From contig OZ251243.1 of NCBI GenBank assembly GCA_965240325.2, positions 558,001 to 622,000 of the forward strand: 64,000 nucleotides of DNA, written 5' to 3'. The DNA comes from Rebecca billardiae RCC1528. Lineage: Eukaryota; Protista; Haptophyta. Positions within the stretch are counted from its first letter, which is position 1. Each line of letters opens with the position of its first letter. Under the pieces are notes generated by a model. That model saw only the letters and a program-made list of their open reading frames with translations. It had not been told where the DNA came from and made no database searches. A program made the position numbers and the translations under genes. Positions 42,448 to 48,750 of the stretch are shown here, piece by piece.

Positions 42448-45400
42448 TAGGGGGTCCAGGCCTCCACTCCAGCCGTGACGATATTTAGCTGACGGCTTCA
42501 AATAGTGCTCTGATAATCGCGGCGCTCGTCAGGATGGTGTCTAATATACATATGAGCACGGCCCAGGTCGCAGACAGTGTAGATGCTAGGCTGATGTGCG
42601 CCCGCGGAGCCGCGCGGCCGCGGCGCGCGCACAGCGGCCAGCCGTGGGTGTCCGGGAGCAGCCGGAGCCGCGCGGCCGTTGGCGTTGCGGCGGGCGAGAT
42701 GTGGCGGCTGACAAGGTGCAGGAGAGGCGCGACCCGCGCTCACGCGTGCCGACAGAGCGCCTGGGTGGGCAGGGCCGCGGTTGCCGTGGCCTATCGACTC
42801 GTCGCAGGGGCCGAGGCCACGTACTCGATCGCGTACGTGGGCCCGCAGTACGTCTCGCCGCAGTCGAACTTCACCTGGCACAGCTCGCCGAGCGGGTCGA
42901 CCGCGACGATGCGGCCGTAGTACCAGCGCAGGCCGGTCGGGTGCTCGGGGCTCTCCTTGAGCGCGCCCTCCGCCTCCGCCCTGCGCACGAGGTCCGTCAC
43001 GGCGAGCGCACGCGGAGGGCGCGGCGCCTTGAGCACCTCGTGCGCGCTGCGCGAGAACGTCTCGGGCGTGTCCGCAGCGTCGGGCTGCACGTGGACGGTC
43101 TCGCCAGACACCTGGGTGACCTCGCCCGCGATCCACTCCTCCGACTCGTCGCGGCGGGCCACGACGCGGTCGCCGCGAGCGAGCGCCGCGTCCCTGGCCG
43201 CAGTGGTCACCTCCGCTCCCGCCGCCAGCCGCGAGAGCTCGTCCTCGCGCACCGCGTCAGACGCGGCCACCTCGTCGTCCAGCTCGGCGTGGATGGCCAC
43301 CTCGCCATCCTCGTCCTCACCGAGCAGCGCGGCGAACTCGACCCACTCGTCGGACTCCGCGGGCCAGCCCTTCCAGCGCACGCAGTAGACCCGCACGCCC
43401 CGATGCGTCATCGCACCGACGATGTGCTCGACTTCGTACTGCGTGCTGCTGCCCCTCGGCCGCGCGCGCCTCGGGCCAGCCACCCTGCGCGACGCCGCGC
43501 CCGACTTCGCCTTCATGCCGGCCGCGCGCAAGACCTCCGCCTCCGTCACGTCGAGGGCGTAGGCCATGACGAGCGTCTCCAGGCGCGACTTCTTCGACGT
43601 GTTCTTGCTGATCAGGATGTCGTAGCGGCCATCGAGCACGCGCACGCAGCGCACCTGCTCGAGCAGCTGCTCGCTGCTGAGCGCGCTGAACTCAACCCAC
43701 GTGCGCACGCGCACGCGCTCGAGACGCTCGCGCTCCTCCGCGAGCCGCTGGGCGACAGCAGCGGCCTTGGCCCGGAGCTCAGCGAGGAACGCCTTGTCCG
43801 CCAACCCCTTGGCCAGCTTCTGCGCAGTCGACGACCCGTCAAAGGCCTCGCGCTCGTGCGCGAGGAATCGCATCGAGCCGTGCATCTCCTCGGTCTGCTC
43901 CTCGTCCCACAGGTTGAAGAGGCGGCGGTAGAACGGGCCCGTGTCGTTCAGCTTGAACTGCGCGATCGAGCAGGTGGAGACGTCGTTGCGCGTGACGGCG
44001 GAGTCGACGATCGTCTTGAGGATCGAGAACGAGCGCTCAACAGGCGTGTTGCGCGACGGCATGTTGTCCCGCTTCGCCTCCTGCCACGGGGCGAGGTTGA
44101 GGTTCTTGCCGCCGAACTTGTCCCAGTGCGGCTTCTCCGCCTTGTAGACCTCGGAGTCGAGCTCGCCGTGCGGCGCGAGCATGGTCTCGCAGTGGTGATG
44201 GTGGTACGCGCGCGCGCCGACGCGGAACAGCCGCTTGTGCCACTCGACCGCCTCGTCGCTGACGATCCACTGGCCCGTCATGCTGTCCTGCCGGCTAAGC
44301 TTGCGGCGGATGATGTCCGCGCGCGGGTCCCTGTGGTGCTCCGCAAACAGCATCTCGGCGCCGGTGAGGAACGGGCCCGGGTCGTCACCCCAGCGCACGA
44401 AGCAGGCGTACACGCGCTGCGTGATAGGCGCGAGCTCTCGCACGTGCGCGACGGTCGTGTACGCGTGCATCACCGGCAGGTAGATCTCGAGGTAGAAGAC
44501 GGCGAGCACGCACAGACACTTGTGCACGGTGTCGCTCCCGAGCATCTTGATCAGGTAGTTGCGCGTCTTGCCGCCCTCTTCGCCCTGCCTCTCCTTCATC
44601 ATCTGGAGGAAGTCGAGGATGCGGTCGCGCCAGAGCACGATCGCGATCGCGTTCTTCTGCTCTCGGCACACGGCAGCGTCGTGCGCGGGCACGGGCGGGG
44701 ATGGAGGTGAGCGAGCGCAGTCGCACGCGGCAGAGTGCGCCGCGCGCGCGGCCGCGCGCGCGACCCGCGGCCGCGCGAGCTCGCGCTCGGCACGCGCGCG
44801 CGCGCGCTCGGTCGGATGCGCGGCGCGCGCACCCAGAAGACGCCGTTGCGCGAGCCGTGGATGGCGCTGAAGTCCTTCATGATGCTCTTCTCCTCCGGGT
44901 CGAGCTTGCCATGCGCGAGCACCCACTCGATGAACGCGTCACCCTTGGCCCAGTCCTTCTCCGAGAAGGGCGAGAGGTACACGCACAGCCGGTAGATGAA
45001 GTGCCAGATCGGCGAGTCGAAGAGCCAGACGCCCGTGCGGAACTTCTTCGCGTCGGGCGACTTCACCTTCGTGCCGCTCTGCAGCTCCGCCGCCTCAGCC
45101 AAGAAGGCCGCGCCGAGCACGTCGGTCGCAATCGTCATCAGCTCCTTGCCCATCGCGTCGAACGTGTTGACGAGCGCGTGCTCCATGCAGTTGCTCCACA
45201 TCGTCGAGAGCATCACCGTGATCAAGAGGGCGGAGGCGCCGCGGAAGAGGAAGCGGCCGAGCGCGGCGAGCCGCGGGTGACGCGACCAGTTCTGCCGCTC
45301 GCGCTGCTCGGCCTCCTCAGGCGTCGAGGGTGACACCGGCGGCGCGCGCGCGGCGCCGCCCACGTGCTCGCTCGAGGTCGCCGCCTCGGGCTCGGCCAGC

Positions 45401-48400: not shown

Positions 48401-48750
48401 TCGTCCACATCCATCTCACGAGCCAGCTTGAACGCACTGGCGCGCGTTCAAACTCGCGGTTTGAATGCCCGACGCCGGCGACCGTTAGGTCCGGGAACGT
48501 CATGGCGGTCACCCGGACTCGCGCGCTCGGGCGCTCGCGACGCCCGTACGCGCTCTGCCGCGCCGACGCGACGGCGGTGATGACCGTCCACTCGTGCATG
48601 GCGGCCGCCGCCACCCTCTGAACAGCTTCCCGAGGCGGGCGGCCCTCGACGCGCGAGCGCGGCCTGAATTTATGGAGAAACTCGCGGGCAGTCAACTCGA
48701 AAACCCGCCAAGTCATTTTTCGAGTTTATTTTGGTGTGCTGGACCCCCTA
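42448..48750 (-). mobile_element. Autonomous DDE DNA transposon (CxxH group: hAT/P/Dada/Kolobok/MuDR-related), inserted in (TAGA)n
   Basis: 12-bp TIR TAGGGGGTCCAG...CTGGACCCCCTA; flanks ..TAGATAG / TAGATAG.. are compatible with a 3-, 7- or 11-bp TSD; one large spliced gene inside. Confidence 0.88.
42791..48414 (-). CDS. Transposase, ~1760 aa, with coiled coil, DDE core, Dpy-30/RIIa-like inserts, chromodomain and two Tudor-like domains; exons 48414-48384, 48227-44833, 44656-42791
   Basis: ITDAACK (D), IVTDRAA (D), NCMEH (CxxH), NTPVERSFS (E); YEVEHIV..YCVRWKGW..DEWV; phase-compatible GT-AG introns 48228-48383 and 44657-44832. Confidence 0.82.

Follow-up and report, generated by a model that had tools for sequence, protein, structure and literature searches.

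A putative hAT-like DNA transposon of Rebecca billardiae with a C-terminal chromodomain and two Tudor-like barrels in its transposase

The stretch of DNA analysed here, referred to as the window, consists of 64,000 nucleotides of the haptophyte Rebecca billardiae RCC1528 (assembly GCA_965240325.2, contig OZ251243.1, positions 558,001-622,000 of the forward strand). At positions 42448-48750 it contains an apparent DNA transposon of 6,303 bp, the subject of this report, with a gene on the minus strand for a very large transposase that carries a chromodomain and two Tudor-like barrels at its C-terminus. The element is bounded by perfect 12-bp terminal inverted repeats (TIRs) and splits a microsatellite, (ATAG)n, at its exact borders; the window has exactly two occurrences of the TIR sequence TAGGGGGTCCAG, one inverted relative to the other, against about 0.14 expected by chance, and the sequence of the termini is TAGGGGGTC. 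When the ends are read as TAG...CTA, a perfect repeat is restored only by a target-site duplication (TSD) of 3, 7 or 11 bp. An initial annotation, made from the sequence alone, had described 12-bp TIRs, a cut-and-paste element and a TSD of 4n+3 bp that restores (TAGA)n; all three descriptions hold, the element looking autonomous in view of its TIRs at the split microsatellite and its uninterrupted gene.

To the right of the element, Tandem Repeats Finder (TRF) reports (ATAG)27 at 48750-48857, base 48750 being the final base of the right TIR. The tract picks up again as 44 units at 56014-56190, past a Copia long terminal repeat (LTR) element (about 48858-56013), indicating that one long microsatellite was struck by two unrelated elements; in total, at least 77 (ATAG) units have been cut in three by the DNA transposon and the Copia element. 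The window contains no further copies or miniature inverted-repeat (MITE-like) derivatives of the element. Its G+C content is 68%, and long tracts of (TA)n and (CA)n also occur at several places in it.

The spliced coding sequence, in which the only stop is the terminal one, comprises 1,763 codons distributed over three exons: two long minus-strand open reading frames (ORFs) are joined through a 176-nt intron, and a short first exon is joined to them through a 156-nt intron. Relatives from marine metagenomes (described below, and designated P or L) support both introns. At the junction of exons 2 and 3, the sequence GSRNGVFW-x-NA[IV]A is uninterrupted in P0004 and P0001, GT..AG introns are found at the same codon in L001 and L006, and the reading frame of L003 breaks there. 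The intron of L001 is in frame and free of stop codons, which explains why P0028 has about 28 extra residues at this site. The initial annotation had proposed a three-exon protein of about 1760 residues with these same two GT..AG introns, exon 3 being spliced to exon 2, and in these respects it was confirmed, but its start of exon 1 (ATG at 48716) is out of frame with the donor at 48383 and had to be replaced by the ATG at 48414, the only one in frame with that donor and conserved in L003. The gene is intact and its introns are real. The features of the element are listed in Table 1.

Table 1. Features of the transposon and its flanks, in window coordinates.
Feature	Position	Strand	Remarks
Left flank, (ATAG)6 microsatellite	42424..42447	.	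Last 7 bp, TAGATAG (42441-42447), are a candidate TSD
Left TIR, TAGGGGGTCCAG	42448..42459	+	Element's 3′ end with respect to the gene; same terminus in L006, L009 and L013
3′ untranslated and subterminal region	42460..42790	-	
Exon 3, 621 codons and stop	42791..44656	-	Remaining helical insertion domain, catalytic-E motif, coiled coil, small helical module, chromodomain, two Tudor-like barrels
Tudor-like barrel 2	42812..42994	-	Candidate cage RWYYG ... KFDCGETY; WYYGRI at 42925
Tudor-like barrel 1	43019..43192	-	RGDRVVAR..EEWIAGEV..VHVQ; RGDRVV at 43177; aromatic cage incomplete, only one W
Chromodomain, YEVEHIVGAMTHRGVRVYCVRWKGWPAESDEW	43277..43444	-	Aromatic triad Y, W, W; YEVEHIV at 43438
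Candidate catalytic glutamate E1349 (VERSFS)	44036..44038	-	E-R in all full-length relatives
Intron 2, 176 nt	44657..44832	-	GT..AG, phase 0, directly after GSRNGVFW
Exon 2	44833..48227	-	N-terminal region, coiled coil of about 340 residues, putative RNase H-like part (D676, D768), two Dpy-30/RIIa-like helices within an insertion, CMEH, beginning of helical insertion domain
CxxH motif CMEH, residues 1024-1027	45178..45189	-	Family form NC[MH]EH[AG]LVN
Candidate second catalytic aspartate D768 (VTDRAAPE)	45955..45957	-	[VST]TD[RK] in all full-length relatives
Candidate first catalytic aspartate D676 (ITDAAC)	46231..46233	-	Conserved in relatives
Long coiled coil, Ala/Glu/Lys-rich	46624..47661	-	Pfam gives only weak Fib_alpha; aligns with coiled coils in relatives
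Intron 1, 156 nt	48228..48383	-	GT..AG, phase 1; exon 1, donor and acceptor conserved in L003
Exon 1, coding part (MDVDEGAPLAG)	48384..48414	-	ATG at 48414; conserved in L003
5′ untranslated and subterminal region	48415..48738	-	Includes the inverted pair AACTCGAAAA / TTTTCGAGTT
Right TIR (CTGGACCCCCTA on the + strand)	48739..48750	-	
Right flank, remainder of (ATAG)27	48751..48857	.	First 7 bp, TAGATAG, are the second candidate TSD copy

The transposase begins with an N-terminal region and the long coiled coil, which probably serves oligomerisation, and continues with the four motifs that the initial annotation had singled out (ITDAAC, VTDRA, CMEH and VERSFS), each of which is in its place and conserved in relatives. 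The conserved anatomy, which is of the DDE type, suggests that D676, D768 and E1349 are the catalytic residues. An insertion of about 250 residues places the CxxH motif about 255 residues past the second aspartate, and a further 320-325 residues or so, predicted to form an all-helical domain, separate CxxH from the glutamate. To represent the catalytic region, an AlphaFold2 (AF2) model of relative P0028 (P0028:365-1400; 1,036 residues; 43% identical to the window protein) was used, the window protein itself having been modelled for exon 3 only. In the P0028 model the equivalent of D676 ends a predicted strand, followed by two strands and a helix, with low confidence in this part.

The insertion between the second aspartate and CxxH contains two helices resembling the docking helices of Dpy-30 and RIIa (YLEQHGVRHKLAGAYAELLAERPP... 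and a second copy; 45424-45753, residues ~836-945). They are conserved in all relatives; the copy in P0001 has a weak match to the Pfam Dpy-30 model, and P0028 has an additional Tudor-like beta insert between the helices.

The tail of the transposase is composed of a chromodomain and a predicted tandem pair of Tudor/Agenet-like barrels, types of module through which cells read marks on histones. The window protein alone scores 22.4-22.7 bits with the Pfam Chromo model (PF00385), below the cut-off of 25.1 bits, and phmmer aligns its chromodomain with CDY (E 0.0033) and also with LHP1 and MPP8. When a profile of the family (A5) was compared with solved chromodomains, the E-values improved to 4e-6 for CDY and LHP1, with values of about 1e-3 for HP1, CBX and MPP8. 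The cage positions in the CDY alignment are occupied by Y (of YEVE), W (of RW) and W (of KGW); the corresponding residues are aromatic in P0028 (F, W, Y) and P0004 (W, Y, F) and degenerate in L006 and P0001. The chromodomain with its aromatic cage, as reported in the initial annotation, is therefore real.

Both barrels have an SH3-like fold in the AF2 model of exon 3 of the window protein (m4edce68937f1), for which the mean predicted local distance difference test score (pLDDT) is 81, with values of 80-94 over residues 490-615. Foldseek matched them, at a probability of ~1.0, to Tudor/Agenet readers of the tandem or triple kind, namely those of SETDB1, BAHCC1, ADCP1/AGDP1, Sgf29 and Spindlin. 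With VIA, barrel 1 was superimposed on the Tudor domains of MTF2, PHF19, TDRD3, SMN and UHRF1 (Z 7-8.2, root-mean-square deviation 1.1-2.3 Å, about 50 residues), and by shape residues 486-606 matched a Tudor_3/Agenet cluster of the ESM Atlas. Barrel 2 has a candidate cage, W-Y-Y ... F-D-x-G-x-x-Y, which has the form W-x-Y-G ... [FY]-D-[DN]-G in the family, and the cage of barrel 1 is not kept. Of the two Tudor-like modules that had been proposed, both folds thus stand, and a reader cage is plausible only in the second. The tail was found in the window protein, P0028, P0004, L003, L006, L013, and P0001 together with L004. Its presence in every full-length relative indicates that the fusion is old and ancestral to the family.

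When 1.84 billion representative proteins were searched exhaustively with HMMER, only 25 relatives were found, and a later profile search of 5.8 billion proteins yielded about 25 more, all of them unannotated members of the same family without a Pfam domain or an informative name on record. The relatives originate from marine assemblies (JGI, ENA/TARA and Logan) with 59-69% G+C, and scans of GTDB and IMG/VR for additional loci found none; this is a small unannotated family that so far comes only from this alga and marine metagenomes. Full-length relatives are 25-45% identical to the window protein and have the whole layout in common: a coiled coil, x-x-D-[AG], [VST]-T-D-[RK], the Dpy-30/RIIa-like helices, NC[MH]EH[AG]LVN, GSRNGVFW, an [AS]-E-R-x-F motif, a second coiled coil, a chromodomain-like module and two beta barrels. 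Motif conservation was assessed in P0028, P0004, P0001, P0008/L003, L006 and L014.

One relative, L006 (LKMJ01015789.1), is a complete element: its gene layout is the same, the unit measures 6.5 kb, and each of its ends carries the terminus TAGGGGGGTC (as TAGGGGGGTCGG at position 95 and as CCTGACCCCCCTA, which ends at 6622). L009 and L013 each have one terminus of the same type, and L009 has an internal copy, CCCCCCTA, 24 bp inside its end. These termini have the consensus TAGGGGG(G)TC, in which the TA is part of the element. A duplication of the dinucleotide TA, with TIRs that begin GGGGG..., would suit both complete elements but requires an imperfect microsatellite; internal copies of CCCC(C)TA in L009 and L001 place the TA inside the element and make this reading unlikely, and it was rejected.

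Two other features of the ends were observed. A 10-bp inverted pair (AACTCGAAAA / TTTTCGAGTT) lies at 48660-48715, some 35-85 bp inwards from the right end of the window element, and a similar motif, TTTTCTCGA, is close to the left end of L006; these sequences may be transposase-binding or promoter elements. L008 (6620-6660) and L013 (5215-5265) have the same 3′ terminus, followed in L013 by ordinary flanking sequence and joined in L008 to a 5′ terminus of the same orientation with eight nucleotides missing (GAGCGAC joined to AGGGGGGTCGCTC). The junction in L008 could be a tandem pair, a circle-like joint of the ends or an assembly artefact.

A sister subfamily (L014, L015, L016, L008:148-1581/L013 and P0015) encodes an additional GNAT acetyltransferase domain, which in L014:2256-3092 matches the Pfam Acetyltransf_1 model with 45.5 bits (cut-off 20.7). 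The domain is inserted right after the helix of the CxxH motif (NCHEHALVN), and the chromodomain-like and Tudor-like modules follow downstream. The presence of a chromatin "writer" beside the "readers" tentatively suggests that these elements could modify chromatin as well. In L014, the last ORF (4942-6909) runs about 350 residues past the second Tudor-like barrel as a Cys/His-rich extension with no Pfam match, loosely reminiscent of the Cys box and His box of ubiquitin proteases.

The interpretation that is favoured, with somewhat better than even confidence, is that the window contains an intact, autonomous cut-and-paste DNA transposon of a hAT-like family, with a reader tail that possibly biases its landing sites. 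The initial annotation could not place the element in a superfamily; several weak but agreeing lines now tentatively place it beside hAT, and it is likely that the family is a divergent hAT-like lineage. Among 48,161 representatives of the Protein Data Bank (PDB), the hAT transposase Hermes (8edg_A) is the top structural match to the P0028 catalytic model and the only one with Z of at least 8 (Z 8.8, 185 residues), aligning residues 510-862 of the model with residues 247-459 of Hermes, from beside CxxH through the helical domain, of which the model is confident. The P-element transposase, Transib and RAG1, all present in the PDB, are absent from the top 50 structure matches. VTDRAAPE and NCMEHALVN are similar to VTDRGAN and NCSSHLLSN of Hermes, and the motif P-S-x4-E-R-x-F-S...R-N...N is similar to the C-terminal signature of hAT transposases. 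When features from a protein language model were compared, the neighbours that have a named family were almost all hAT in both tests (Dimer_Tnp_hAT, FAM200-ZBED5, ZBED1_RNase-like, DUF4371 and DUF659). The predicted structures that Foldseek matched to the catalytic model also include a DUF4371 protein. The short TIRs of hAT elements have the terminal motif YARNG (PMC3014272), which the TAGGG... ends of the window element, L006, L009 and L013 satisfy.

Several observations weigh against this interpretation. The P0028 catalytic model has a pLDDT of 65, falling to 32-47 in its beta core, and the strand expected to bear D768 came out as a helix; consequently, the RNase H fold is not demonstrated. 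The Z-score of 8.8 with Hermes is within the range that chance matches between helical folds can reach, and the alignment ends before the E motif. In Hermes, CxxH follows the second aspartate by about 17 residues, in contrast to about 255 in this family. No Pfam hAT model (Dimer_Tnp_hAT PF05699, DUF4371, ZBED/FAM200 RNase-like or BED) was matched by pieces of the window protein at E ≤ 10, by eight relatives at E ≤ 0.1, or by further relatives and segments at E ≤ 10, and there is no BED finger in the transposase. Family profiles found no transposase among PDB sequences, and Foldseek found nothing convincing for the P0028 catalytic model in the PDB and Swiss-Prot. A feature search of the ESM Atlas with the catalytic piece of exon 2 returned no transposase family, and a first word-indexed search with exon 3 returned nothing. 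The 8-bp TSD of hAT elements misfits this copy, in which the 8 bp preceding the element (ATAGATAG) and the 8 bp following it (TAGATAGA) are offset by a one-base shift, unless its two ends are unequal by one base. L006 has no TSD of 1-10 bp within flanks of only 94 and 129 bp, an absence that was given little weight because these flanks may derive from different copies of a collapsed repeat. Expression of the gene in this alga is unsupported: the reads gave nothing and no RNA run is listed, one low-coverage sequencing run having contributed three short identical fragments. The 7-bp reading of the TSD, the insertion of about 250 residues, the missing BED finger and the unconfirmed RNase H sheet are the reasons why the family is not filed as an established member of hAT.

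Another explanation, which is considered unlikely, makes the family an undescribed superfamily in its own right among the CxxH-type DDE transposons, with unnamed proteins of about 800-1,000 residues in Basidiomycota, Porifera, Mollusca, amphioxus and haptophytes as its nearest kin. Any resemblance to hAT would then be no more than the general likeness that hAT, P, MULE, Kolobok and Dada share. In the AlphaFold Database (AFDB) and the ESM Atlas, the neighbours nearest to the catalytic region in structure and features are unnamed clusters of such proteins from Basidiomycota, Porifera, Mollusca and amphioxus. Foldseek matched AFDB clusters of uncharacterised sponge, mussel, amphioxus and basidiomycete proteins at E 2e-8 to 1e-4, along with one DUF4371 protein and one protein annotated with a MULE transposase domain; the matches R1DIY6 and R1DHJ8, with R1-prefixed accessions, are proteins of Emiliania huxleyi. 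Shape matches in the Atlas were likewise to Basidiomycota and Porifera, and its feature scores are 0.88 and 0.78 for unnamed clusters versus 0.73-0.75 for hAT families. The lack of a hAT Pfam match and a TSD of 7 rather than 8 bp fit a separate superfamily, as does the long insertion between the second aspartate and CxxH, which has been reported for Dada (PMC3706591). However, the unnamed clusters could themselves be divergent relatives of hAT, and may be an unannotated group of transposases that links this family to hAT. Hermes is the sole solved transposase to surface, with the P-element transposase, Transib and RAG1 outside the top 50, the named feature neighbours are consistently hAT, and the YARNG-type ends and the ERxFS motif suit hAT.

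The initial annotation had drawn a comparison with Dada, a target-specific superfamily with a CxxH or DxxH motif and a TSD of 6-7 bp. The 7-bp reading is within this range, and Dada transposases tolerate a large domain between the second aspartate and DxxH and occur in algae and basidiomycetes (PMC3706591). Nevertheless, membership is highly improbable, and the comparison fails against both the published description and an alignment of Dada proteins. Dada elements have no TIRs and sit inside snRNA or tRNA genes, and their transposases have N-terminal CCCC and C-terminal CCHC zinc fingers (PMC3706591), a pattern of which none was seen in the window transposase. Their motifs (ILKMDSTKKV, LYVDRDCC, RLDVWHFMRRF and RGSTSLESFHLHLNR) are unlike those of the present family, and their distance from D to E is about 176 residues. 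In the alignment, none of six family motif strings is at a conserved position, five being absent and the sixth, SRNG, occurring once in unaligned sequence. Dada was thus excluded by perfect 12-bp TIRs, the lack of zinc fingers, unrelated catalytic motifs and the microsatellite location.

As for the mechanism of the hAT-like element, the anatomy of the DDE module suggests cut-and-paste transposition, in which the transposase would bind the TAGGGGG(G)TC termini and excise the element, and reinsertion would proceed by a short staggered cut (7 bp in this copy). Through its reader tail, the complex would be tethered to nucleosomes with methylated lysines, which would bias the landing place; such a reader-guided choice of target is plausible by analogy with chromoviral integrases, and a preference for safe, repeat-rich chromatin, as the initial annotation had it, is hypothetical. 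Two observations bear on the location of this copy. The termini of relatives are in ordinary, non-microsatellite DNA, which rules out (TAGA)n as a family-wide target, and the Copia element is in the same (ATAG)n tract, so that tolerance of insertions there accounts for the location no less well than targeting. Both are accommodated by a rather doubtful alternative according to which the tail gives the transposase access to its own silenced, methylated donor copies in heterochromatin, or interferes with host silencing, and the (ATAG)n location reflects only where insertions are tolerated. The GNAT writer of the sister subfamily fits manipulation of chromatin better than simple tethering, and for this reason a donor-access or anti-silencing role was kept under consideration; yet the established role of chromodomains in mobile elements, as cited for chromoviruses and MAGGY in 10.1101/2021.11.30.470311, is the tethering of integration. 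A broader possibility, put forward only tentatively, is that the family represents a deep, undescribed lineage or superfamily of giant DNA transposons with a chromatin toolkit that both reads and rewrites the chromatin of its targets or donors. All members appear to combine a chromodomain and tandem Tudor barrels with Dpy-30/RIIa-like helices in the catalytic domain, and one branch has GNAT. If this proved true, chromoviral targeting would have its equivalent among DNA transposons in this family, whose toolkit might in addition act against silencing.

That chromatin can guide integration is well established for LTR retrotransposons; the evidence for it in cut-and-paste DNA transposons consists of a few reports of domain co-occurrence. 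With defined ends, a conserved tail and an intact gene, the present element makes the choice of sites through histone marks by a DNA transposase directly testable. A natural transposase with readers, accompanied in sister elements by an acetyltransferase, also bears on how transposons escape or use host silencing, and is a possible model for engineered chromatin-targeted integration. The family illustrates, moreover, that large transposon lineages of marine protists stay invisible to annotation based on Pfam.

Compared with known systems, the family resembles hAT elements (Hermes, Ac, hobo) in its short YARNG-type TIRs and apparently in the order of D, D, CxxH, a predicted helical domain of about 320 residues and E in an ERxFS-type motif, whereas its coiled coil of 340 residues, a protein two to three times the usual hAT size, the chromodomain and tandem Tudor tail, and a TSD that reads as 7 bp in this copy instead of 8 bp set it apart. 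With Dada (PMC3706591) it shares very large DDE transposases, a C/DxxH motif, the capacity to accommodate an additional domain downstream of the second aspartate, and occurrence in algae, but Dada differs in its lack of TIRs, its zinc fingers, its insertion into small-RNA genes and its unrelated motif sequences. The architecture is not wholly without precedent, because gene models that fuse hAT with a Chromo domain of the CBX/CDY type have been described in the sponge Ephydatia muelleri (Grau-Bove et al., 10.1101/2021.11.30.470311). Those models likewise join a hAT-type DNA transposase to a chromodomain, but they were found by Pfam co-occurrence in one animal, whereas the present transposase is unrecognised by Pfam, adds two Tudor barrels, and belongs to a divergent marine-protist family in which the fusion is conserved and the elements have defined TIRs. 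To the question raised by the initial annotation of whether a described family has the same architecture, the answer is accordingly mixed: hAT with Chromo is known in the sponge, but the literature search found no description of a TIR family whose transposase has a chromodomain and tandem Tudor domains, nor of the present family. Among LTR retrotransposons, Gypsy-10_Ec32 of Ectocarpus was in 2025, to its authors' knowledge, the first transposable element with a Tudor domain (PMC12477816). Like this element and the chromoviruses (Ty3/Gypsy), for which tethering is proposed or shown, the present family has a C-terminal histone reader on the inserting enzyme; unlike them, with their retroviral-type integrases, it is a TIR-bounded, apparently cut-and-paste family that combines both types of reader.

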